From Octopus sinensis (taxonomy: Eukaryota), in contig NC_042997.1 in the NCBI RefSeq assembly GCF_006345805.1, positions 22,320,001-22,384,000 of the forward strand: DNA of 64,000 nt. The letters are read 5' to 3'. Under the pieces are notes generated by a model, which worked only from the letters and a program-made list of their open reading frames with translations, was not told the DNA's origin and did no database searches. Every line of letters starts with the position of its first letter. Within the stretch, counting starts at the first letter, position 1. Shown here one piece after another: positions 2,850 through 55,861 of the stretch. The translations under genes and the position numbers were made by a program.

Positions 2850-3215
2850 CATGAGGATAATACCCGTCCCGTCTAACACCCGTGGACATATTTACAAAGT
2901 CAGAAAACAGCACAGCTCCCATGACTTTAGGAAACACTTTTTCATGCTGAGAATTGCTGAAGCATGGAACAAACTGCCGGCATCAGTTGTTAGTTGTCGG
3001 AGCACTGCATCCTTCAAAACTTCCATGCTTTCTGAGATTCGCCAACACTACACCTGATTTTCTCCCCTCCATACACACACAAGCATGTATCTGACTCATA
3101 CACTGTTCACTTTCCAAACATTTGTACATTACTGCATATACTTTATATGCACTTTTGACAAGTTGTGGTTCACCTGAGCACTGTATACAATAATTTCATT
3201 ATTATTATTATAATA
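2850..3215 (+). mobile_element. CR1-clade LINE 3' end (5'-truncated) with (ATT)n tail
   Basis: Translates TRGHIYKVRKQHSSHDFRKHFFMLRIAEAWNKLP (CR1-type TRGH...WNxLP), followed by a 3' UTR; a near-identical inverted copy lies at about 23612-23937. Confidence 0.8.
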
Positions 3216-3333: not shown

Positions 3334-3432
3334 GTATCATGGCTGGTTCAAATCGTTCCGGAGATTTAGCTGATGCACAAAAATCAATCCCAACAGGAAC
3401 TGTGGCTGCTATTATGACCACATCATTAGTCT
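3334..3432 (+). CDS. kcc: KCC (SLC12A4-7-like) coding exon 1 in window, TM6-TM7
   Basis: Acceptor ttgcag| then (G)[32 protein letters not shown](Y), a cation-chloride cotransporter signature; ends at donor GTATCCTT; phase 1-1, 99 nt. Confidence 0.97.
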
Positions 3433-3462
3433 GTATCCTTTTTTTAAAATTAATGGATTTTG

Positions 3463-3499
<37 letters not shown>

Positions 3500-4199
3500 T
3501 ACTTGCCAGCCCCACTTGTAATAGTACCATGTAAGAAGCACCTGTGCTGGTGCAGTGTAAAATGAATCTGTACTGGTTCCAGATAAAAAAAAAACATCCA
3601 TGCCAGTGCCATAAAAAATGTACCCATACCTGTACCACATAAAAAGCACCTGTATAAAAAGCATCCAGTACACTCTGTAAAGTTGTTGGTATTAGGAGGG
3701 GCATTCAACCACAGAAACCATGCAAAAACAGACAATTGGAGCCTGATGCAGTTCTCTGGCTTGCCAGCTCCTGTCAAACCATCCACCCATACCAGTATGG
3801 AAAACAGGTGTTAAATGATGATGATGATGATTTACTAGTATCTTATGTAAAGGCAGTTCTTTAGCTGAAATGTTATAACATCAGCATATAGGTGTTTGAT
3901 CCTGTTTCTTCTAAATTCACATAAGAATCAACTTTCATCTCTGAAACATATGAACTGGGTACTTTGGCTGAGTATAGCTAAGAAGTTCTCATCCAAACCA
4001 TGTGGATTCAGGTTCGATCCCACAGCACAGGACTGGAGACAAGGATATATTCCTAGAGCTCCAGACCAACTAAATCCTTGAGATGGGATGTTCTTTGGAT
4101 GGGAACTAAAATAAGCCCATCATATGCACGTGTTTACATTTTCACTTTACCAAATGTCACAAACTAAAGGCAGTGATAATGTCATTTCCCTGTCAATGT

Positions 4200-4373
4200 A
4201 GGAGTGGCTGTGTGGTAAGTAGCTTGCTTACCAACCACATGGCTCTGGGTTCAGTCCCACTGCGTGGCACCTTGGGCAAGTGTCTTCTACTTTAGCCTCA
4301 GGTCGACCAAAGCCTTGTAAGTGAATTTGGTAGACAGAAACTGAAAGAAGCCCATCGTATATATGTGTATGTA

Positions 4374-4412
<39 letters not shown>

Positions 4413-4617
4413 TTGTTTTATTTGTGTTTGTCCCCCCCCCAACATCACTTGACAACCGATGCTGGTGTGTTTACGTCCCCATAACTTAGCGGTTCAGCAA
4501 AAGAGACCGATAGAATAAGTACTAGGCTTACAAAAAATAAGTTTTGGGGTTGATTTGCTCAACTAAAGGCGGTGCTCCAGCATGGCCACAGTCAAATGAC
4601 TGAAACAAGTAAAAGAA
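4200..4617 (+). mobile_element. tRNA-headed SINE family B (representative)
   Basis: Head GGAGTGGCTGTGTGGTAAG...GGTTCAGTCCC, central (TG)n; other copies at about 16160-16500(-), 40075-40225(-), 46605-46790(-), 56712-56870(+), 60705-61040(+), 61255-62300(-, split) and 63510-63835(-). Confidence 0.85.
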
Positions 4618-5639
4618 TACTTTTCCACCTTTGAAGGCACATAATATAAAAGATCACTTATTGAAAAACATCTAAAGATTAGCAATAGGAAGTGTGTCTA
4701 GCAGTAAAACAATGTCTCACCAATACATTCATCTAACCCATGCTAGCATAGAAAAACAAACTTTATTGCAGCTGATTGAGTTAATTATATTTGATTCTGT
4801 GTAAAAATTTCCCTTGTCAATGTAAAATTTAATAATCTGCATAAAAATCACAAGGTTTAATAGAATGTTAATTAAAACATTTAGAGTAATACTTTCAGAA
4901 GTGTGAAGGCTTTGTAAAAATGAATTTGCCATAACATCCAATCAACTTTTTTTTATAGTTCCTCTGAGAAATTTATTTGAACTAACAGTTCATTATTATA
5001 AATGGCTCATTATATGAGATTTTAACAGCTTTTCCAGAGAAATTTTACAGTAACAATTTCAGAAGGAAGAAGAAATAAAAATATGTTTACTGCTTTACTG
5101 TGAATGAGATATACGTTCAGATAATTTCCAAAATAAATACTTATGTTGAAACCCAGAGCTGAATTTTTGCCAAGCATTTTATAGGCAACATTTTACTTTC
5201 ATTTAGAAAATAAAATGTTCAGTTCAACAAAAAAGTAATAAACAAAAATTTGCCTGCTGTGAAAACAAACCACTGTCAACTCTCTTAACTGCTTAGGTTT
5301 CATCAACCACATAATCTTCCAAATTAAAGTCATGTTTATATGTACTGCTCCTAGCTGGCTTCTTGTCTGGCCAAAATTTTATTCAATATTTCACTTCTTT
5401 TTCTTTTTTTTTTTTTGTTTCCTGGATTAAGTAGTTGTACTGTAACCATGTTGGGCCATAGCCTTTATGAGTCTTAGTTGGTTATATTAACCAAAGTACT
5501 GTTACTTTACTGAGTCCAGATGAAAAAGGACATGAAAGTAAGCTGCGCATAAAATGGCTCTAACCAATATGGGTTGAAATGCCAAAAAGTATTTTCATAC
5601 AATGCAAAGATTTTCTATCCTACACTGACATACAACTGA

Positions 5640-7785
5640 GTTGTGAAGTAGAGGATTGACTTCTTCACAGCTTCATATCAAATTCTGCTCAGACCTTCAA
5701 GCCATGGTGGAGTTGCTATGTATATCTGTGAAGATGTCACACCTCTTGTATTATTGTCACATTCAAACTCAGTTTGCAACACCTTAATAATACATATCAA
5801 GCAAGCTGCACAATATATTGTCTACCAAATACCACAAAATATGATGGAAAATTTGAGGATAGCCTCAAACACATTGAAGAGGTATTAACAAACCTAGATC
5901 AGAACATCAACATACTCTTCTTGGGTGATTTCAACCTCCCACATGTCAAATGGCCAGAAGACCACATCCTCTCTGGGATGTCACTGCATGAACAAAAGCA
6001 TGTAGCGTCATTATTTGAACTTACTAATAAGCTGTTCATGGAACAAGTGATACTCAGGCCAATCAAGAGGAAAACATATTGGACATATGCTTCACAAATA
6101 ATGTGGACCTTTTCCATGTGAAGATGACACCAATGACACTCTCAGACAACAAAATTGTTGAACTAACTATGTATGGTCCTGTACATATTGTTGGTATTTA
6201 CTCTATCAGGAGGACTAGAGCTTTATCCAATCTGAATTTCCATAAGGCAAAATGGGAATCAATCCACAGAGATTTACAAACGAAACTGGTCCAACATTCT
6301 GTGAATGCAAGACATTGATCTGAAACTCAGCCAGTTTATGTCAACAGTGCAAGCTATATGCACTAAATATATCCCAGAAAGAAAGGCCAGCACACTGTCA
6401 AACCAGATTCCCAGGGACAGAAAATCCTCATGAGATGCAAATCAAAGACCTCAAAGCGGCTGAATAGACAACTGAAAGATAGAGAGAAGTCTCTTAACAT
6501 GGACCCTCCTAGGAACTGAAAGCAAGATCAAACTCTCTCATGAAAGGAAAAAAACAAAGAGCAAATGGCTGTGGAAAGCATAAAAACAAATCCCAAAGTT
6601 TTCTATAAATTCGCAAAGGAAACAGCTACAATACAATATAAAATAGAACTTTTGTTCCAAGGGAATGGCTCACTGATGGCAGACCCACGAAGGATAATTG
6701 AGATAATTAGTGAACAATTTAAAAGTGTCTTCATTTCCCCACTTGGACACATGCAGATAAAAAAATACAGCTGAATTCTTTGATATTGCAGCTCTAAAAA
6801 AAGGAGACACCAGCCATCAATTACATCAACATTGAGGAAACAGATGTAACAGTGTCTATAGATGAAATGAGCTCATGCTCTGCTACTGATCCTGATGGCT
6901 TCCCAGCTATTCTCCTAAAGTCATGTAAGCAGGCTTTAGCAAAACCACTTCAGATACTTTTCCGAAGTTTCCTTGCATGTGGTATACTTCCTAAAAAGCT
7001 GAAAAAAGGTATTATATGTCCTATCCACAAAGGTGGAAGCATAGCAGAGGCCAAAAACTACTGGCCAATCTCTCTGACTTTGCATATCAGTAAAGTCACG
7101 GAGTGAATCATCAGAAGTTGGTAATGTTCCTAGAAGAAAATGACCTACTGAATAATACTCAGCATTATTGCCAATTATTATTCTTTTATCCAGGAAGAAG
7201 CTGACTCACACAGCTCCTACAATACTGTGACTAGGTTTTGAAACAGCTACTTGACCATTCAGATGTCACTGTGATATACATTGACTTTGCAAAGGTATTT
7301 GATGAAGTAGATCATGGCATGATAAGTCATAAGCTATGAGACTTTGGCATCGCTGGTAAACTAGGAGAGTGACTGCATGACTTCCTGAAAAACAGAAGTC
7401 AGGTAGTTGCAGCCAATGGTGCCTTTCTGAGGAAACTCAAATCCTAAGTGGTGTCCCCCAGGGAACTGTTCTAGGGCCATTACAGTTCATAACAGCCCTC
7501 TTAGATATGCCCACAGTCACTCAGACAGCCACTGTCGCTAGTTATGCCAATGATACAAAATTATCATAGGCAATAAAAAACCAAGAGGATGTCACAAGTT
7601 TACAGTGGAACTTAAACTCAATATACAAGTGGACTGAAATAAAAAATATGCAGTTTAATGCTGGAAAATTACAAGCACTGCTCTATCAACTCACAAATAC
7701 AGTACAATCTACATTTACAGGACCCAAAAGCACTACAATCCCAGAGTCACAGGCAGTGAAAGACTTGGGGATCAATATATGCATA
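5640..7785 (+). mobile_element. Degraded CR1/L2-group LINE ORF2 (APE endonuclease + RT)
   Basis: Motifs across frameshifts: HGGVAMY, FLGDFNLPHVKW, PDGFPAILLKSC, PIHKGGS..KNYWPISLT, YIDFAKVFDEVDH, SGVPQGTVLGP, YANDTKL; many stops. Confidence 0.85.
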
Positions 7786-7965
7786 AGCTTCCCCTCGCTG
7801 GGTTGACATCCACTGATTAGTTTTGGGCTAGTTGCCCCTTATCAATGTGGAGTAGCCAAACCCAGCAGGCGTTGCTGCTGACTGTCTGTTTGAAGGATTA
7901 TTTACCTAAATTCAGTGGAATACATCCACTGGTTTTCAAAATTAGAAATATTAACATTTCTATAT

Positions 7966-8006
<41 letters not shown>

Positions 8007-8388
8007 CTTTAAGCTGATGTCCCAGCATGGCTGCAGTCCAATGAATGAAACAAGCAAAAGATAAATAGTAATAATAATTTTTAAACATTAAACGTACGTC
8101 CGTAGGTAACTTAATACAGAATGATTTCCGTCATTTCTTTCTCTTTTGCCTGCGTCGTTTGTTTTTTAAGTGCTTTGGTTTTACTGGGATCGCCCTTTTA
8201 AGTAGAAAGAATAGCCAAAACTTTTTGACTGCTATTTCTAAATTCGGAATGTGGTGAGGCAAATCGTTGCTGAACCCTTAATTAATTAGTATTACTTAAA
8301 CCTTCCTTGAATGGGTCTTTTACATGCCGAACTCTACTTGGTGAAATTAATGATTATTTCTAAATTAATTAATTTCACCCTATATTAT

Positions 8389-8440
<52 letters not shown>

Positions 8441-10894
8441 TTTTCGCTCAGAGATTTAAATTTAAAATTATTTGTTTTTCTTCTTACAAGATCAGTGACT
8501 CAGTGTCGCTTTAAAAGTATATACTATGAGCAGGAGCAAGTGGCTGCTATCTCTAGCCAGCAGCTGTCCTATACCGATGGAAGGGAATTACCCAGAACCA
8601 TTGGTCTACAGGTATTGCTATGGCTAGAAAGGAAGCAGTAGGCTCCCTTGCTCATAGCATACAGACATAGATCATGTGTCGGTAGCCAGCTGGAAAAGAT
8701 GTTTTTCGGGGGCTAAAAAGTAGTAACATCATCCCACGTAGGACTGCCACTTCACATTGGCAAATCTCTCTCTATATATAGATAGATATAGATATATATA
8801 CATACATACATATATATATTGTATGAGTTTTTCTTTCTTCCATCATTTGGCAATCAATGTTGGTTTGTTTTTATTGCACTAACTTAGTAGTTCAGTGAAG
8901 AGAAACAGACCAATAGAATAATTTCCAGACTTTAAAAATAAGAAATGGAGTTGATTTATTTGACTAAACTCTTAAGCTGATGTCCCAGTATGGCTGCAGT
9001 CCAATGAATGAAACAAGCAAAAGATAAATAGTAATAATAATTTTTAAACATTAAAATTTACAAAGTAGGTAGTAAGCACTCCAGAACTGAATCTTTCTAC
9101 ATCATGCAAAACATTTTAAAAGGAATGTAGGGTAGGGGAAACCCCTCCTATTATTCAGACTATAAATATGCTATAAATAATATTCATTGTAATCTGTTAT
9201 ATAAAGCAACAGTTTGTTCAATTTGAGATCATTTCAAAATAGTCTGACTAATTTTTAGATGAATTATCATATAATATTGCATAGAAAATGTTGGCTAATA
9301 ATTCATCTCTGTGTTTCATAATACATAAGAATTCATTTTCGAAATTTATTTTGCATACATCACATTCACAGTAAACTATAAATCATGTATTCTGAAGTTG
9401 TTGCAGTAAAAGTTTTGGAAAAGCTGTTAAATAGGATAATTATCGTAAGTTACAGATGTGGCTGAGTGGTTAACAAGTTTGTTTTGCAGCCATGTGGTTT
9501 CAGTTTCAGTCCCACTGTGCTGCAGATCAAAGATGATCAAAGCCTCATGAGTCAATTTGGTAGAGGAAAACTGAAATAAAAGCCTTTTCCATGCTTGCAT
9601 GGGTCAGACAATTTGTTGAGGCAGATTTTCTTTGGGTAGATGCCCTTCTTGGCATCCAAGCAAGGTAATATTTCTTCATGGCCAGACAAATTTTTCACAG
9701 AAGACTGGAAACAAACAACATTGTTTGTATGGAGGTGACACTCATTTGCAAACCATTTTTCATAACCTTTCCACTACATATATATATATATTTATATATA
9801 TACATCGGCAAGTAACAAATGCCATTTGAAGGTGGCCATTGCCAGTACTGCTTGACTGGCCCTTGTGCCAGTGGCACGTAAAAGCACCCACTACACTCTC
9901 AGAGTGGTTGGCGTTGGGAAGAGCATCCAGCTGTAGATTCTCTGCCAGATCAGATTGGAGCCTGATGCAGCCTTCTGGTTTGCCAGTCCTCAGTCAAATC
10001 GTCCAACTCATGCTAGCATGGAAAGTGGATGTTAAACGATGCTGATGATGATGATCATCATCATTATCATCATCATCATTTAACATCCATTGTCCATACT
10101 GGCATGGGTTGGATGGTGTGACCAAAGCTGGCAAGCTGATTGGGCTGCACCAGACTCCTGTCTGATCTGATATAATTTCTACAGCTAGAAGACCTTCCTA
10201 ACACTTTCCACTTTATAGAGTGTACTGGATGCTTTTACATAGCTCTTCATGGTGCTTTTACATGATGCTGCACAGGTGCTTTTACGTGTTACCATGTGGG
10301 TGCATTTACATGTCACCACAAGGGTGCTTTTATGTTTCACCACATGTATATGTATAGTGCAAAGATTATGCAAGATGTAATACAGAAACAAGGTAAAAAT
10401 AGAGAGAGTTGGTATTAGTTTAATGCTCGGGAAATGGAGAAAAAATTTAAGAAATATCTTTAATGTTTCACCCTTGTCTTGAAATCACATCATGGTTATA
10501 AATGTGCATCATCATCATAATCATACAAGCAATGTTGTTTGTTTCTAATCTTCTGTGAAAAATACAAGAACAAATTACCTTGCTTGGGGAAACAGGTGAG
10601 TGTTGGGGACAGAAAAGCATTTGACCTTGGAAAGATTTGCCTTGACAAATTCCATCGGATCTCTGAAAACATGGAAAAGTGAATGCTTAGATAATGGCTG
10701 GATGACTTATAAAATCATTTTACAGATTGAAATTTGTGAAATATGGATGCCTTTTTCTTTTTGGTTTTTAGTTATTTGACTTGATATCAAGAAGAGCATC
10801 CAGCTACAAAAAATTCTCACGCAATAATGTTTCATCTAACCCAGCCAACCAGAGGAAAGAGAAAGTAGATGTTAAAGCAGTGCTATGCATACAT

Positions 10895-10908
10895 ATATTA
10901 TGTGTGTG

Positions 10909-10940
<32 letters not shown>

Positions 10941-10967
10941 GAAAGATAAATATAGATAGATATAATA

Positions 10968-11051
<84 letters not shown>

Positions 11052-11465
11052 AATATAAAGAGAGAGAGAGAGAGCTTGTTTTATTCCAACTTTTCTATGC
11101 TTTTATGCCCAACCTCTCAACTGTTAAGTTAAAGTACAATCTGCTTTTTATGTGAACTACAATCTGCTCAACTTTCATAAAAGCAGAATTATGTGCTTTG
11201 CTCAGGTGCACATGATGGCAATTAGGTCATGTTTGTGTGTGTATATATACGTATATGTGTGTATTCATATGTACATATGTGTGTGTATATATATATATAC
11301 ATCCATATGTATATATATCTATATGCATGTATGTATATATGTATATACATATGTATATATATGTGTGTGTGCATATATATGTATATATATATATATGTAT
11401 GTACATGTATTTCTATATATATACATGTATATATATATATTTGTATATACATGTATATATATCTA

Positions 11466-11508
<43 letters not shown>

Positions 11509-11520
11509 TATATACACATA
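10895..11520. repeat. Compound (TA)n/(TG)n/(AG)n microsatellite field
   Basis: Visible dinucleotide arrays; source of the Y/I/C/V-rich artefact ORFs. Similar arrays at about 7970-8000, 8395-8435, 13980-14110, 15425-15575, 20395-20450, 20690-20865, 28455-28585 and 39605-39655. Confidence 0.95.
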
Positions 11521-11521
11521 C

Positions 11522-13572
11522 ACTAGCTTAAGGTGACCTGCTCTACACGCGGGTAAGAGTGTGGTTGTTACTTTCTGTTGCTTCCTTCCAGCACATAAAA
11601 AGCACCATCCGAACGTGGCCGATTGCTGCGCTGCCCTGACTGGCTTCTGTTCCAGTGGCACGTAAAAAGCACCAACCAATTGTGGCCGCTGCCAGCCCCC
11701 CTGGCACCTGTGCCGGCGGCACGAAAAAAGCAGCCACTACACTCACAGAGTGGTTGGCATTAGGAAGGGCATCCACCTGTAGAAACACTGCCAGATCAGA
11801 CTGGAACCTGGTGCAGCCTCCTGGCTTCCCAGACCCCGGTCAAACTGTCCAACCCGTGCTAGCACGGAAAACGGACGTTAAACGATGATGATGATGATTC
11901 TCCCTCTTTGTTTCTCTCTCACTTTCCCACTCTCTTACTTTTCTTTTCTCTCGGACTCTCCTTAACTTTCTCTTACTCTCTATCTTTATCTATCTCTCTC
12001 CCATTTATAAACAACAAAAGATCTTGAGTAAGTTGAGAAATAAAATATTTTGAAAGATCAATCATAAATATCAGGCAGTGACAACAGAAAGGTCTGCTTC
12101 AAGGCAGAGAGCAAAACACTAACATTTAAAAGGGACAGATGAACTTGCGAGCTGAATAAGAATAATAAAATATTGGAAACCAAAGTTTGAAGGGATAGAA
12201 TCTGAGGATAGTAGAGTCACCATGGCTGGCATTTCTTAACGACGGACAGCAACGTATTGACAGTTTAACGGCTGGTGTAAAATTTTGAACTTGATGTAAA
12301 AGAAAATTCCTAAACACCAAGTTTTGAAGTGATTCTTTCTCACGACAGTAGACTCACCATGGCAAGCATTCAAAACTTCTTCATCATGGACGGCAACACA
12401 TTGACGATTAAAAGGCTGGCGCAAATTTTTTAGCTTGATGTAACAGAGAATTCCTAAACACCCGCTCCTTTAAATTTTAATCCCCTTCCAGCCCTATTTA
12501 GACCCCTTTTCACATTTTGGTTAATATAACCCGATTTCATTCGGGTCTACTGGGGCCACATTTTATAAGATGAGGAATTTTGTCCTAGAGGTCATACCTT
12601 TCATTTGAGGAAAAAAATAGTTGTCATGCAAACTTGCCAGCACTTTTAACATAGGTGTGCATATTTTCAGCTCAACCGACCACATAATGCACACATTACA
12701 TATATAAATATATATATATATATATATCTATGTATATATATGTGTGTGTGTGTGTGTGCATGCATTATATATACAAATGTATACAAATTATATATATATA
12801 TGTATAAATTAAATTAGAGATAAAACCACTAATAGGCAAATCAAACAGTGAAAAACATAAACCAAAACATAAAAATAAAAATATAATATATAAAATATAA
12901 AATTGAAAAATTTAAATTATTTAAATTTAAAATTAAAATTATTAATTTATACTTATAATTTTTGTTTAAATATACATAACTATCAAAACGTATTAAAAAG
13001 TTTAATATACATAAATACAGATATATACACTTTGTATATATACATTATATATACATATTTATATATAGAACACACACACACACACGCACATATATAAATT
13101 AACCCAATAAATATCTGATTCATAATATTTGTTCTCATAATTGTGTGGTGGTTGTGGCGATTATAATTCTCTCTATGAATGCAGACAGACGTAGAGAGAG
13201 AGAGAGAGTGTGAAAGCACTGTCGAAGTTGGGGAGAGGGGAGATATAGAATGCCGTGACACAACGTTATAAAGAGAAAGTGAAGGTAAGGGAGTTAGACG
13301 CCGTGAAATGACGTTATATATAGAAAGTGATGGGAAGGGAGGAAAGAGAGTGAGTGACGGAGGAAGACAGATACCTAAAAGAATGAGAGTAGACGTGTCA
13401 AAGTGAGTTTTTGGCCCTAGCAACGACACCTTTTAAGATGGAGATTTCCTTTTACATGTCCCTGTAAATTTTGGAGTTGGTCCGACTGGATCTAGTGGCC
13501 TTTAACCCATTCTCAATGCCAAAACCAGACAAACAAACAAACTTCGCATTTCAGATTTATAATATAGAGATA
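11522..13572 (+). mobile_element. Helentron-associated (HINE/DINE-1-like) element with nested repeat
   Basis: Starts ACTAGC...GACCTGCTCTACACGCGGG, ends CAGACAAACAAAC...TTTATAATATAGAGAT within (TA)n; two diverged tandem units of about 140 bp at 12180-12460. Confidence 0.5.
11590..11898 (+). mobile_element. Repeat family C (RTE 3' UTR-derived; representative)
   Basis: GGCACGTAAAAAGCACC subrepeats, TTAGGAAGGGCATCCA core, (GAT)n tail; about 18 copies on both strands, e.g. 3560-3830, 9830-10060, 19945-20305, 24790-25120, 31410-31800, 37660-38000, 53363-53620(-). Confidence 0.85.
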
Positions 13573-14036
13573 TACAGTGTTTCTATATATATATACATGT
13601 ATATATATGTATATACATATATGTAGATCAGCCATCTTTCTTTTCCTAACTTGAATATCTTTCTTTCCTTGTGATCAACTGCAGGGATCAGATGCATTCT
13701 TGTCTGTCTCTTGTCAATGCCTGTCCCACCATTGGTCAACACCTCACTTTGTTTAGGCTTGGCAGCCTTTCCTGTTTGTTTTCACTATCCTGTTTTTGTT
13801 ACCAACTTTGGTCCTCCGCAAAATCCCAGAGTAGAAAAACAGCCGACAACTGATGAAGGATCGTTCTTTATGTTGCTTGTCTTGTTTTAAATCTCTTTCT
13901 TTCATTGTTCACAAAAAATGTTCGTGTTCCATGTTTTCATATTTTGTATTTCATGTTGTTTACATTCTGTGATGTACTGTGCCCATATATTCACATGTAT
14001 ATACATATATATGTAAGTATGTACATATATGTATGG

Positions 14037-14069
<33 letters not shown>

Positions 14070-14070
14070 C

Positions 14071-14113
<43 letters not shown>

Positions 14114-14114
14114 T

Positions 14115-14985
14115 ATGTTCTGCAACATGAGGACCAAAGACTTGAAGTGTTTCATGTTGCAAGACAGTGTGTGAGAGACAATCGTGATGTCATAGGAGAG
14201 AAATGTGTCCGCATGGATGATAGCTCACTTGCATTTAATGAGACTGCAAAGAAAGAGACTTGGAGACGTTACTATGAATGGTTGAGAAATGAAGAGGATG
14301 AATGAAGGAAAGAGAGTCTGCCGAATGTCAACCCAGCAGAGGGACCAGCTATCCGAATTGACAGTACCTTGGTAGATAAAGCAATTAATGATATAAAGAC
14401 AGGGAAAAACCCCTCCCCAGCCCATCAGGAATCACCGCAGAGATGCTTAAAATATCTGGCAGTGTCGGCTATAGTCTAGTCACCTATATTGTCAATCAGG
14501 TGAACCATGACGGAGTCATGCCCAATGACTGGTATAACAGCACCATAGTCAACTGCTATGAAGGTAAAGGTGATGCATTAGATGCAAACAATTACAGAGG
14601 TATCAAGTTGTTGGATCAGGTAATGAAAGTCACAGAGAGGGTCATAGCCCAACTAATTAGGGGGAGAGTCAGTCTAGACGAGATGCACTACTGATGCTAT
14701 ATTTCTGGTAAGACAGCTGCAGGAGAAACACCTAGCCAAAGATAAACCTCTGTACCTGACTTTCATTGACATGGAGAAAGCCTCTCACATTGTCCCCTGA
14801 TCCCTTATCTGGTGATCAGTGCAGAATCTAGGGATAGATGAGTGGTTAGTGAGAGCTGTACAAGCCATGTACAGGGATGCTGTCAGTAAGGTGAGGGCTG
14901 CAACAAGTACAGTGAATAATTCCGGGTTGGAGTAGGTGTCCACTAAGGATCAGTCCTCAGCCTCCTCTTATACATCATATATATA
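14115..14985 (+). mobile_element. RTE-clade LINE RT fragment
   Basis: KGDALDANNYRGIKLLDQVMKVTERV, KDKPLYLTFIDMEKA, GVHxGSVLS motifs; frameshifted. Confidence 0.8.
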
Positions 14986-15541
14986 TGTATGAGAAGTATT
15001 GGTGTCAAGAAGACTCAAAGGTGTCAGATAATGCTGAGTACATGCTATGGACAGACCATAGTTAAGCCCAGGTTCAATAATGATACAAATGAGGAGTATA
15101 ACATAGGTCGTGTATTAGCATGCATATATATATAAAAAATTAACAGACTGAGATAAAAAAAACCCAAGGCTGTGAATATTTTTCAGAACAACTATTCACA
15201 ACCTTGGATTTTTATAGTAAATCCTAAAAAAGAAGAACAACAAACATAAAAAAAAACACAAGGGGACATGGTACATGTAAAGTATTAGCAGACGCTCAAG
15301 GAAGGAAAGAAAGATGGCTTAACGTTTTGAGCAACTTCTCTTCTTTGGAAACAGAGGAAAGTCCAATAGAAAGGAAGACGCAGGAAGAAAATCACCAACG
15401 ATTCACGTGGTTACATTTTGAAATATATATATATATATGTATGTATGTGTATATGTACATATGTGTGTGTATATATATATATATATACATTTGTGTGTAT
15501 ATATATTTGTATGTATGTATGTATGTATGTATATATATATA

Positions 15542-15576
<35 letters not shown>

Positions 15577-16900
15577 ATTACATTAGAAGTCTAGGTTTAA
15601 AAAGTACAAATACATGTATTGAAAATCTCAGCCATTTCTTTTTAATTGTTTAGTTTAGTGTGCTACCAGCTACACTGAGGTCATAGAATTTGACCTGTGA
15701 TGGAAGAAATACAGAAGTCAGAGAAGAAAGAGATATTCATGGAATGTATGTCATTGATTCAATAAAAGAACTGTGAATGAATGTTTTGATAAATGAGCAA
15801 CTAAAGATTATGAATTAATCATAAACAACAACAAAAAATTAATTTGAATAGGAATATTATACAAATAAATTAGTTATTAGGGACAACACCAGTGTTTGTA
15901 ATGAATAATAATAGGCATATCCAAATATGCTAATTATTATAGAAATAGATGCCAATGAATGAAATGTTTGATAACCAAATACGGAAATGCATCTACAAAC
16001 CTATTTAAGCTTGAGCCAATGAAGTTTCCTCTAGATCATTGTTCTACCCAATAGAATTAGCAGCCAAATCTACCTCAACCCTCATGAATTCAATGTACCT
16101 AAAACTGCTCCTGGTTTTATGACACAAACTTCCTGTTTTAAAATTGATGAGTTAAATCCTTCTCTTTTACTTGTTTCAGTCATTTGACTGTGGCCATGCT
16201 GGAGCACCACCTTTAGTCGAGGAAATCGACCCCAGGACTTATTCTTTGTAACCCTAGTACTCATTCTATCGGTCTCTTTTGCCGAACTGCTAATGTTACG
16301 GGGACGTAAACATGCCAGCATCGGTTGTCAAGCAATGTTGGGGTACAAACACAAACACACAAACATACACACACACACACACATATATATATACATATAC
16401 ACAACCGGCTTCTTTCAGTTTCCAAGCTGTCACACGATGGGACTGAACCAGGAACCATGTGGTTGGTAAGCAAGCTATATACCACACAGCCACTCCTGCG
16501 CCTTCTAAAATTTCATGCTTTATGTTTTAACAGCTTAATTATGACAACGTTATTTTAGTAAATTTTTCATTATTTAAAAGAATTATTGAAACAAAGACAG
16601 TGTATTTTAACAGAATATGGTAACAAAAAGATTAAATGTTACTCTACATGCATATTTTTAAACAAAATTGGATAACAGAGTTCTAAGCGCACTTGTCCCT
16701 TGTGGAAATATAAATAGTCATGGCTAGAATTACTTTGATCTATTTGATCAATGCTGACCTAAGGCTAAATAATAGCAACCAACTTCGATTTTACCAGAAC
16801 TGTGAAAAGAGCTCTCAACAATTGTAGCGATTTATTTCAAATGAGCTGACAGTTATTTTACTTCTACTGAATTTTTAATAGAGTAAAATTTTTTCTCTAG

Positions 16901-17197
16901 TGGAGGCGCAATGGCCCAGTGGTTAGGGCAGCAGACTTGTGGTCGGAGGATCGCGGTTTCAATTCCCAGACCGGGAATTGTGTGTGTTTATTGAGCGAAA
17001 ACACCTAAAAGCTCCACAAGGCTCCGGCAGGGAGTGGTGGCGACCCCTGTTGTACACTTTCACCACAATTACTCTCTCTTCCTGTTTCTTGAGTAATGCT
17101 GTGATGGACTGGCGTCCCGTCCAGCTGGGGGGAACACATATGCCACAGAAACCAGGAAACCGAGCCCATGAGCCTGGTTAGGATTGAAAAGGGCGAT
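16901..17197 (+). mobile_element. tRNA-headed SINE family D
   Basis: A box TGGCCCAGTGG and B-box-like GGTTTCAATTCC; internal GATGGACTGGCGTCCCGTCCAG resembles a V-SINE-type conserved segment (from memory, unverified). Confidence 0.7.
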
Positions 17198-17831
17198 GAA
17201 AATTTTTACATGACTTTAAAAACATGAGTAAAAGTATAATTTTAAGTTGCAAAGGAATATCAATACTAAAGACCTTTATAAATATATTGGACAAATGCAG
17301 ACAGTAGGATAGCTGAACAATCATGAGACAAAATTAAGAGCTTAAAAGATAGTTCATCTCCAGCATTATTTACTCTTTTGTTCCCTTATTTCTATTGAAT
17401 TACACTAACTTACTTGATATTTATCTGGTAATTGAAACATAAAATTAACATGAAATTTTGATGAAAGGTTTCGTTTTATCTCACATCAAAAAAGAAAGTT
17501 TGTGTCTTAGAGCCAAGAGTAGTCTCAGGCAGGTTGGTATCAAAAGGGTTAAGAAAAGCTTCCAATAAAGGAGACTAATTAATTATAGGATAAAGAAAGT
17601 ACTTAGCTGAAGACCTGTGATGGAAATTGAGTGAGCAACTGTTAAACTGGAAACTAATCTTCTGACATCAATAAAGAACTTGCTTGGCAATGGTTTCCAA
17701 AAGTCATTAAGATAAATTCAACCTTGGCAGGATAATGCAAAAGTGCATGAAAGATTATCAATATTAGCGATATTATGATAACAATTATAGCTTTTTATAT
17801 CTTTGTACTTGTTATCTTTAACTATATTTAG

Positions 17832-52285: not shown

Positions 52286-52402
52286 ACACCATCAGGAATG
52301 TTGCTGGTGCCCAGTTGGCATTAATGGCCGTAAAAGGCATTAACCAGTTCCCAGTTAACACGCAAAAACTAACCGGAACCATAGATGTCTGGTGGATTGT
52401 TC
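52286..52402 (+). CDS. kcc: KCC coding exon 12 in window
   Basis: (D)TIRNVAGAQLALMAVKGINQFPVNTQKLTGTIDVWWIV(H); ttatag| acceptor; ends at U12 donor ATATCCTT; phase 1-1, 117 nt. Confidence 0.95.
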
Positions 52403-53878
52403 ATATCCTTGAAATTAAAATTAATAATGTATAGAATTAATTGAGCTAACACCTTTATCAAAGTACAAAAATACATTCATATAAGTTAGAAATACTTTCA
52501 TCTTTCTTGAAATAGCTTAAATAATTATATCTAAAAACCTTAATTTTATTTTATCCAATTTTTTGTTTGTTTTTTAGCATGATTAGACAGATGTAAAAGG
52601 AAGTAAATTTTCCATTGTGTTAAAGCAATCAGTAAATATTTTTAACATCATAACTTATAGATATCCTTATCTATATAGCTTAGATCCTTCTAGAAGATTT
52701 ACATCTCCCTACTGACCGCTAGCATTCCAACATTTACAAGATAATAGCAATTAAAGCTGTTGATGTCTTGAGCTCAATGGAAGTTCAGTGATTACTTTGG
52801 GTAAAATAAACATGCATATGTGTTTATACATGTGCATGTTTAATCTCCCATTGATATAAGATGGCTGATAATGATTTTAATAAAAGGTCAGAATTTTCAA
52901 CATATAACTGGAATGTAAGAGAGATGAAAAACAAAAGTACCCAAGAATTCATTTAAGGTAAACAAGAGAAACATGATCTCAAATAACAGAATAATTATAA
53001 TACCGGTGAAGAGAAAGTGTCAGATATCTTGTCTTTATTTTAACATCTGTTTGGTACCATGGAGAAAGCACCTACACCAGTGCCATGTAAAAGCACCCAT
53101 GCCACTGCTGCATAAAAGCACCTAGTATACTCTATAAAGTGTTTTGTATTAGGAAGGGCATCCAGCCATTGAAACCATGCCAAAACAGACATGGATCCCA
53201 AGCAGCTCTTCAGCCAACATGGAAAATGGACATTAAATGATGATGATGATTTCCTGTTCTAGATTGGATGAGGAGTTTAAAAAATACTGATTTTACAGTA
53301 TGTGTATTATTGACAATATTTTATTAAGGTTTATTATGTGAGTATATGAATTTAACTGTCAGATCATCATCATCATCGTTTAACGTCCGCTTTCCATGCT
53401 AGCATGGGTTGGACGTACAGCTGGATGCCCTTCCTAACGGCAACCACTCCAAGAGTGTTGTTGGTTGCTTTTACATGCCACCAGCACAAGGGCCAGTCAG
53501 GTGGTACTGGCAACAGCCACAAAAAAATCGTGTTTTTTTTATGTGTCACCTGCACACCAGCACAAGTGCCAGTAAGGCGACGCTGGTAATGATCATGTTC
53601 AAATGGTGCTTTTTACATGCAATGGATATTTCTATAAAAAAAAAAGATAAAAGAAAAATCTTAATTAATAAGAAAAGTATGTTTAAGTAAATAAACTTGA
53701 ATAGTTATGATTAAGATGTTCGATAAAATGTATTTGTCAATTTTATTTTTAAGTATCAAACCATCGATATATATCAAGATCATTATATGAAAGTTTAAAA
53801 AATCAATTTTTTCTTTTAATATCATATTGTTTTGTATATTTGGCTTTTCCCACAATTATTTGCCTTAATTTTGATTAT
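52403..53878 (+). other. U12-type (minor) intron with AT-AT termini, 1476 nt
   Basis: 5' site ATATCCTT; branch-point-like GCCTTAAT at 53862-53869; the intron ends ...ttgattAT; the in-frame join gives GTT C|AT GAA GGA GGT. Confidence 0.82.
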
Positions 53879-53968
53879 ATGAAGGAGGTCTTTTGATGTT
53901 GTTGCCCTTCCTGCTTAGACAACACAAAGTCTGGAAAAACTGCAAACTACGGATCTTCACAGTAGCCC
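53879..53968 (+). CDS. kcc: KCC coding exon 13 in window, flanked by U12 introns on both sides
   Basis: (H)[29 protein letters not shown](Q); there is an in-frame TGA at 53872-53874 and no AG before the exon; ends at GTATCCTT; phase 1-1, 90 nt. Confidence 0.93.
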
Positions 53969-55861
53969 GTATCCTTTGAAAGACCAAAAGTTCAACATTT
54001 ACACCAAATATTTTTGATATCTAATTTTTCAGGGAATTTGTGTATATTCACAAATCTGAAGGAGGTTTTGTTGGGTGTTAGTAAGTATCACTTACTTTTT
54101 GAAGTGGATACAGCTTACATTTCAGGATATATGCCATTCAATATAGTGTAATGAATAAAGGGTGGCAAAAGTGAATATTTGCTAAGGACAGGAATTGGCA
54201 TTGGAGAGGAATTACTGTGAATGACAGATGTAAGAGTGAGGTGAAGGAGGAGAGCTAAGAAAGAGAGGGTTGGTGTGACAGCTGGCTGCCAAATGGCTGA
54301 TAGTGTATCTAGCTAGCAATGTGTTGTCTGAATTACTTAGTGAGTGTTACACAGAGAGATATGTCTAGACATTTAGTGAGGCACAACTAAATAGACAAGC
54401 ACACAAAATGTTAAGCACATGTAGTCAGTGAGTGTACAAATACAACGAAACATAATGTCTGAAAGGAGTGGAGAAGGATAGGAAGACAAAAGCTGTAAAA
54501 CCAAGGAGTAAAAAAGAAAAGAGTGAAGTGTTGAAACTAGAGGAAATGAAGGTAAATGTTCATACAAGTAAGAGCAAAGGTTCTCAGTTCAAAATTGACC
54601 TGTTGTGCTTTTCAATTATTAGATTGGTATATTCCAAACATGGGTTGACTAGATGTGAAGTGGTGATTGACAGCTTTCAGGATGCTTAGGATGGTATTAA
54701 GGACATTGAGCAGATGTCTAGGACTTGTTACTCACATACAAAGTCTTGCAGAACAGCATGTAATACAGTACATTAGATTAGCAAAAGTGCAATCAAAATG
54801 GTCAAAAACGGGTAGTTTACTCAAAGCCATATAGAGTAATGATGCTGGGGCTGAAGTGGGGAATATAGCATTAAGTGCAGGAGGAGCAGGCAAAGGTTCC
54901 AAGTTAGGTGTTAGGGACTTTGGAGTCAGAAATTTTACAGAGATTTTTATCACTTTTGAAGAGGAGTAGGTAAGACTTCGTAGAATATGGGAGCAGTAGT
55001 TAGGTCAAACTGTAAAAAAAATTTCAGAAATTATAAGGAAGTGAGTGAAAGATGAGGATGGAAGGGAATGTATGCCACAGGTTAGCAGTTCAAGACGTAG
55101 AAGAGCAGTGGCGCAGTTAATGGTGTGGGCGTAGCAATACCAGTGGAAGTTTGTGGCTACATTCAAAAGACTGTGTGACAATTCTTGAAATCAGAGGCTA
55201 TGGAAGAATAGATCTTTTAAAGCTAAATATTATCAGTCTAGTGCCATCAGGACTAGAGAGTTTGTCTACTGAAACCAAAGAATTTCCCTTTCCTTCTATT
55301 CTCTATGAGCTTTTATTTGGAATAACTGCTTTGCTGAAGGGGTTGCCCCTGCTACAACTTACTGTGTCCTCATCCTTGTTAGTAATTCTTGACATATCCC
55401 ATATAATAAATAATTGAAAGAAAACAAGTCTGAAAGTGGGAGTGAGCTCTAAGGATTCTTTACATGTGCACAGCATTATTATAAACAAATAGTTATATTT
55501 AGTGGCTGTTTGGCTGTTGCAACTTTTCCAGTCATGCTTTTTTTACACAGGATTTTTTTTAACACAGTAGATTTTTCTACAAAATAATAATTTGGTGGTA
55601 CTGAATTAACTGCCTTAAAATATTTTAAACGTGTGAGTGTGTGTGTTTGTTTGAGAGATTCAATAGAAAATCTAAAATAAATTAAATGGATTGCATTTTC
55701 TTTTGTTTGTATATTCTGAGATTAAATTCCTTTATGTTGACTTTACCTTTCATGTACACAAAATCAATAAAATAATACCAACAATTTGCTGGGATCAATA
55801 TACCATTCATTCAGTTTTTGGTATTCTGTATTTGTTATTTTCTTAATAATACACTTCTTAG
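53969..55861 (+). other. U12-type (minor) intron, GT-AG, 1893 nt
   Basis: 5' site GTATCCTTT; branch-point-like TTTCTTAAT at 55839-55847, about 15 nt from the AG; join C|AA = Gln. Confidence 0.9.

Follow-up and report, generated by a model that had tools for sequence, protein, structure and literature searches.

The window, by which we mean the whole 64,000-nt stretch of Octopus sinensis DNA analysed here, holds the 3' two-thirds of a KCC (SLC12A4-like) gene on its + strand, with 16 exons between positions 3334 and 60466. A human KCC1-like approximate probe served as a lead only, and all coordinates were then obtained from database proteins, by tblastn with XP_029645952.1 (P0241), whose annotated name is 'solute carrier family 12 member 4 isoform X2 [Octopus sinensis]'. 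Spliced together, the 16 exons give 580 codons without a stop, and the translation is 100% identical to residues 454-1032 of this protein, which upholds the assignment to a KCC gene in the original prediction for this locus, a reading made from the letters alone. A pseudogene was considered and rejected, all 16 exons being intact and identical to RefSeq. Over the part that it covers, the O. vulgaris model is likewise identical to the window exons, and the O. bimaculoides sequence differs (FPDNTQ vs FPVNTQ). Homologues were collected with protein queries of 68, 513 and 853 aa, a design that covers hits below 120 aa and above 384 aa; the 68-aa query matches only ORF fragments below 120 aa, and the 853-aa query, a chimera of the window exons padded with the N- and C-termini of Gigantopelta, reached the cephalopod proteins of about 1100 aa. 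In keeping with KCC membership, the homologue matches carry PF00324, PF13520 and PF03522 (AA_permease and SLC12 C-terminal domains).

The exon borders were set by enumerating all donor/acceptor pairs that reproduce XP_029645952.1 between mid-exon anchors. For 14 of the 15 junctions this procedure returns exactly one GT-AG placement, and for junction 12 it returns none. Three placements are allowed at this junction, namely AT-AT (52402/53879), TA-TA, and a second AT-AT (52404/53881), all of which give the same mRNA, and the first was chosen because it agrees with the U12 donor consensus. No AT-AC, GT-AG or GC-AG placement at junction 12 reproduces the known protein. The predicted spliced join 52402/53879 reads ...ATTGTTCATGAAGGAGGT..., and the features that surround it are as follows.

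52286..52402, + strand: KCC exon 12 (..DTIRNVAGAQ...TIDVWWIV and the first base of a His codon), ending in phase 1, from tblastn and junction enumeration against P0241
52403..53878, + strand: intron 12, termini AT...AT, 1476 nt, phase 1, the sole junction of 15 without a GT-AG solution
52403..52410, + strand: U12-type AT-class 5' splice site ATATCCTT, by direct reading, an exact match to RTATCCTT
53861..53869, + strand: U12 branch-point motif TGCCTTAAT, 8/9 against TTCCTTRAY, with candidate branch A's at 53867 and 53868
53872..53874, + strand: TGA in frame with exon 13, which limits upstream extension of the exon (upstream translation ...F*LYEGG)
53877..53878, + strand: 3' terminal dinucleotide AT where the canonical one is AC, intron end ...gattAT, by direct reading
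53879..53968, + strand: KCC exon 13 (AT GAA GGA GGT...), ending in phase 1, from the spliced translation
53883-84 and 53886-87, + strand: two in-frame AG dinucleotides inside exon 13, formally possible as AT-AG acceptors, with the branch A 16 and 19 nt away

All that the original prediction had stated of the sequence at this intron is correct and can be read directly: the perfect U12 AT-type donor after GTT C (exon 12 closes with ...TGG ATT GTT C at 52402), the branch motif ahead of exon 13 with its A 10-11 nt from 53878, the stop just upstream of the exon, and the AT-AT termini without an AC, the last of which is borne out by the enumeration as well, since only AT-AT and TA-TA placements recover the RefSeq protein. 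An 8-mer, GCCTTAAT, lies at 53862-53869 within the branch motif, and A53867 and A53868 stand 11 and 10 nt before 53878. In U12 introns the distance from branch site to 3' splice site is typically about 10-20 nt. Direct reading finds no AC dinucleotide in the stretch that separates the branch site from exon 13, and the alternative in-frame AT that had been pointed out at 53874-53875 is indeed present, only 7 nt from the branch A. The two AGs within exon 13 had been passed over. The last 40 nt of the intron are T-rich but interrupted, and as the whole window is 64% A+T, a polypyrimidine feature is non-discriminating here. With a perfect donor and a near-consensus branch site, the intron deviates in its last base only, and its A at +1, U12 donor, penultimate A and variable last base fit the AT-AN (A-type) subclass. 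Its termini are AT-AT and not one of the canonical U12 pairs (AT-AC or GT-AG); such ends do not bar U12 membership, AT-AT being itself a listed U12 class.

Considered by count alone, the donor motif carries no information: with both strands of the window taken together there are 7 copies of RTATCCTT, against 6.7 expected by shuffling. Since this window-wide count is at chance level, the signal lies in position relative to exon ends, and here three of the five + strand copies fall exactly at exon ends defined by homology, all of them in phase 1. The chance of finding RTATCCTT at one fixed site is about 6e-5. The branch motif CCTTAAY has 10 copies on the + strand, and the chance of one falling in the 10-nt placement window is about 0.002. 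A second perfect copy of ATATCCTT occurs at 52661-52668, 258 nt into intron 12 and preceded by ...cttatag; its presence is compatible with chance, and we found no evidence of an exon or of use at this copy.

The other two donors at exon ends belong to further minor introns in the same gene.

3433..17831, + strand: intron 1, U12-type GT-AG, 14.4 kb, phase 1, donor GTATCCTT
17814-17822, + strand: intron 1 branch site ATCTTTAAC, 10 nt before the AG
53969..55861, + strand: intron 13, U12-type GT-AG, phase 1, donor GTATCCTT
55839-55847, + strand: intron 13 branch site TTTCTTAAT, 15 nt before the AG

The presence of these two additional U12 GT-AG introns marks the KCC gene as a host of minor introns. 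Exon 13 has a minor intron at either end, intron 13 starting 90 nt past the end of the AT-AT intron, and the 10-nt branch spacing of intron 12 is the same as that of intron 1. Both GT-AG introns have conserved donors elsewhere: the intron 1 donor reads GTC T|GTATCCTTA in Lottia and GTC T|GTATCCTTC in Takifugu, and the intron 13 donor recurs in Mytilus, Lottia and a set of sponge-like contigs, where read-through ORFs end ...RIFTVARIL (C|GTATCCT). The conserved Takifugu donor, which follows TTSLV, is the counterpart of the one in octopus intron 1 rather than of that in intron 12.

The product of the join, WWIVHEGG, is found in all four O. sinensis and all three O. bimaculoides current RefSeq isoforms (NCBI predicted proteins), in one superseded O. 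bimaculoides RefSeq model, and in six Logan RNA-seq-derived proteins of other cephalopods. At the nucleotide level, the mRNA contigs L004 (SRR29271472) and L009 (SRR24189495), which come from two other cephalopods with 87-88% protein identity to Octopus, read uninterrupted ...ATT GTA CAT GAA/GAG GG... across it. What these sequences show to be common to cephalopods is the H-E-G-G join, at the level of protein and mRNA rather than of intron ends.

These proteins also bear on the use of the downstream AGs. If the minor spliceosome mainly cut at 53883-84 or 53886-87, the intron would be of the AT-AG type and the protein would lack the conserved H-E-G, reading WWIVRGLL or WWIVRLL. Both sites are in frame, the branch A precedes them by 16 and 19 nt, and AT-AG is the commonest non-canonical class in the table of Sheth et al. 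2006 (11 introns in human, 8 in mouse; PMC1557818). The H-E-G deletion, however, is seen in none of the eight RefSeq Octopus models and in no RNA-derived cephalopod protein, H-(D/E)-G-G is invariant in all KCC homologues inspected, and it is the AT site whose 10-nt spacing equals that of intron 1; we give preferential use of these AGs very little chance, although some share of the transcripts may use them.

Of the five cephalopod annotation sets inspected, three go wrong at intron 12, by truncation, by exon skipping or by a displaced acceptor. The O. vulgaris model CAI9714863.1 (P0364) reads through the intron 12 donor and then stops; the 2015 O. bimaculoides UniProt model (P0259) skips exons 12-13 and carries junk at intron 1 (TTSLHGKRTLNDDDD...); and in Argonauta hians GAB1599326.1 (P0242), whose gene range is 189 kb, the acceptor is shifted by 9 nt, so that the protein reads WWIV-PCVY-EGG. 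The expectation that standard annotation would mis-model the intron was therefore right for these three, but too sweeping, since NCBI Gnomon has the join right in two species. The wrong models trace to a known and fixable blind spot for non-GT-AG minor introns, and automated pipelines have often been found to mis-map non-canonical U12 introns (PMC1557818).

The O. vulgaris model could also be taken at face value, in which case intron 12 would be poorly spliced or not spliced at all, and the protein would be truncated after WWIVH with a regulated or degenerate C-terminus. Its sequence ends ...WWIVHILEIKINNV*, an exact read-through of 52403-52435, and A-type minor introns do show higher basal retention in human cells (PMC8280824). 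Against this, the full-length RefSeq protein is matched with 100% identity by exons 13-16, all of them intact and in frame, two other cephalopods have full-length spliced mRNAs, and a pipeline unable to place non-GT-AG introns is a simple explanation of the truncated model. Retention as the normal fate of the intron seems to us highly improbable.

The Argonauta model is instructive with respect to the last base of the intron. Judged from the protein sequence, and provided that the modelled exon is contiguous, the Tyr codon (TAY) of this model calls for a T at the position homologous to 53878. The nine extra bases would begin directly behind the AC with which a CCTTAAC branch motif would end. 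That would be an impossible acceptor, probably picked by a pipeline for which AT-AC is the sole option. The inferred T matters for the possibility that octopus intron 12 is a canonical AT-AC minor intron, with T53878 due to a mistake in the assembly or to a rare allele. The observed AT-AT is a single base away from AT-AC, and comparisons between human and mouse reveal frequent one-base switches between the two (PMC1557818 Table 3). The independent Argonauta model, with the T that its Tyr codon would place at the homologous position, speaks against such an error, as does the fact that Gnomon built the AT-AT join on this very sequence, if the window is the NCBI-annotated assembly, and the window sequence contains no ambiguity code or N. 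An artefact or rare allele at 53878 is in our judgement very unlikely.

To place the intron in a wider context, we compared the same codon position in other animals. Among large ENA contigs, short ORF matches either run through an intron at exactly this codon or abut it. On three of these contigs (assemblies ERZ25070844, ERZ25069264 and ERZ25068685), which are more like the sponge Geodia than Octopus, four copies of the gene (one each on L001 and L008, two on L007) have a U12 GT-AG intron at this position, also in phase 1. In these sponge-like copies the intron follows WW(I/V)V and a C, begins with the donor GTATCCT(T/A/C), and carries the branch site TTCCTTAAC or TTCCTTGAC, from which 12-17 nt lead to AG|AT GAY GG. 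They resemble octopus intron 12 in position, phase, U12 donor and branch site, and in an acceptor followed by AT GAY GG, and differ from it in their termini (GT-AG rather than AT-AT), in their stronger branch matches (TTCCTTRAC, compared with 8/9 in octopus) and in length, which is 61 nt in L001 and about 330-620 nt in L007 and L008, against 1476 nt in octopus. No intron was found at the WWIV/H position in Mytilus (L003), Lottia (L006) or the Takifugu paralogue (L005), where WWIVHDGG is uninterrupted. The comparison of termini across taxa that the original prediction proposed has accordingly given a divided answer, with a U12 intron at the site in the sponge-like copies, of GT-AG type, and none in the two molluscs and the fish paralogue.

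A few details of these sequences deserve mention in their own right. L007 (ERZ25069264:ctg6746) contains two tandem KCC copies (97-801 and 7580-8228), about 7.5 kb apart, and both keep the U12 GT-AG intron at WWIV/H while lacking an intron after TVA. In the Takifugu paralogue an intron lies at RQHK|VW instead (L005, about 2984-3089). Its first bases are GC (AAG|gcagggg), which may reflect either a GC-AG intron or a misplaced border.

The orthologous introns bear on which spliceosome acts at the octopus site. U2-type AT-AC introns exist (PMC1557818, PMC2831892), and the sequence ahead of the acceptor, like the genome at large, is rich in T, so that removal by the major spliceosome, despite the ends of the intron, might be entertained. 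U2-type AT-AC introns, however, need a G at +5 (PMC2831892), whereas positions +3 to +8 of intron 12 read ATCCTT, with C at +5; a U12 branch motif lies at the right distance, and the orthologous introns are textbook U12. We regard removal by the U2 machinery as barely conceivable.

AT-AT minor introns have been described before, with six in human and six in mouse (Sheth et al. 2006, PMC1557818). Non-canonical ends are found in about 4-5% of U12 introns, AT-AT being among the listed classes (PMC1557818, PMC10639083, PMC8280824), and in animals AT-AT ranks second in frequency among non-canonical minor termini, according to a survey that took in Octopus sinensis (PMC10639083). The description of AT-AT as very rare, which accompanied the original prediction, is thus correct in that the ends are non-canonical, but it overstated the novelty of what is a catalogued class. 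Functionally, AT-AC, AT-AA, AT-AG and AT-AT introns have been grouped as A-type introns, which depend on CENATAC and have a lower average splicing efficiency (de Wolf et al. 2021, PMC8280824). For octopus intron 12, whose donor and branch site are strong, the natural weakening put forward in the original prediction is a putative one, suggested only by this general literature on A-type introns. The AT-AT introns of human ERCC5 and IK and of mouse Gpaa1 and Slc9a8 (PMC1557818) are built like that of octopus, with the ATATCCTT donor, a branch site near the 3' end and a T for the last C, although the introns in that catalogue lie in other genes and in another phylum. Within the gene family itself, the U12 introns of vertebrate KCC genes tolerate odd terminal bases: the U12 intron of SLC12A7 is GT-GG in human and GT-AG in mouse (PMC1557818), and that of SLC12A4 is GG-AG in macaque and cow (PMC2831892). 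The mouse Slc12a4 intron has been used as a model U12 intron, in a reporter with a consensus branch site (PMC8848931).

Taken together, the data favour, with a probability of roughly 85%, the reading that 52403-53878 is intron 12 of the Octopus KCC (SLC12A4-like) gene, an old U12-type intron with AT-AT ends that would be removed by the minor spliceosome. The strongest argument for its U12 identity is the occurrence of orthologous U12 GT-AG introns at the same position in distant animals. That a U12-type intron joins ...GTT C to AT GAA GGA, as predicted, is supported from three sides, by the RefSeq proteins, the cephalopod mRNA contigs and the sponge-like U12 introns. The sequence motifs, their spacing, the exon-exon join in annotated and RNA-derived proteins and the orthologous U12 introns are shown; we infer that the intron depends on the minor spliceosome, which nucleotide serves as the branch, and when and in which direction the terminal bases changed.

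In the mechanism that we propose, U11 and U6atac would recognise the perfect ATATCCTT donor, and U12 would pair with TGCCTTAAT, bulging either A53867 or A53868. The 3' splice site would be set by distance, 10-11 nt downstream, and not by a fixed dinucleotide, with cleavage after T53878. Removal by the minor (U11/U12-U4atac/U6atac-U5) spliceosome would yield ...ATT GTT C|AT GAA GGA GGT..., which encodes WWIV-H-EGG. With regard to history, Octopus would have retained an old U12 intron that several molluscs and one fish paralogue no longer have, and on the lineage leading to Octopus the ends of this intron would have become A at +1 and T at -1, the known AT-AN (A-type) variant. A single old U12 intron whose ends differ between lineages appears to be the simplest reading, the alternative being parallel gain at the same site. 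One could also speculate that the AT-AT ending and an Asp-to-Glu change in the cephalopod proteins have been fixed throughout the cephalopods for hundreds of millions of years, as parts of a slow, rate-limiting intron that sets neuronal KCC levels beside a second U12 intron, a scenario that we consider improbable.

The octopus KCC AT-AT intron is real but ordinary. Its ends are of a catalogued kind, the RefSeq models already contain it implicitly, and it leaves the understanding of minor splicing unchanged. Where the gene models are erroneous, their users obtain a wrong C-terminal domain, so that the intron matters mainly for annotation quality. In evolutionary terms it adds a single clean example, in which Octopus retains an ancient U12 intron that the bivalve Mytilus, the gastropod Lottia and the Takifugu paralogue have lost, and in which the subtype differs between distant animals, GT-AG in some and AT-AT in others.

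Two further observations may be added. The cephalopod KCCs (P0241, P0242, P0243, P0373) have H-E-G-G where all other homologues inspected, from molluscs, arthropods, vertebrates and sponges, have H-D-G-G, and the changed Asp-to-Glu codon (GAA, 53881-53883) is the first full codon past the AT-AT acceptor. The long introns of the gene are full of reverse-transcriptase-like ORFs (window positions about 5700-7800 and 14000-14700 on the + strand, with many other long ORFs on both strands), of recurring ORF families such as ...WLALGRA...KADVKR, and of TA/TG microsatellites that translate as YIYIYI or CVCVCV, a content that fits a repeat-rich cephalopod genome.
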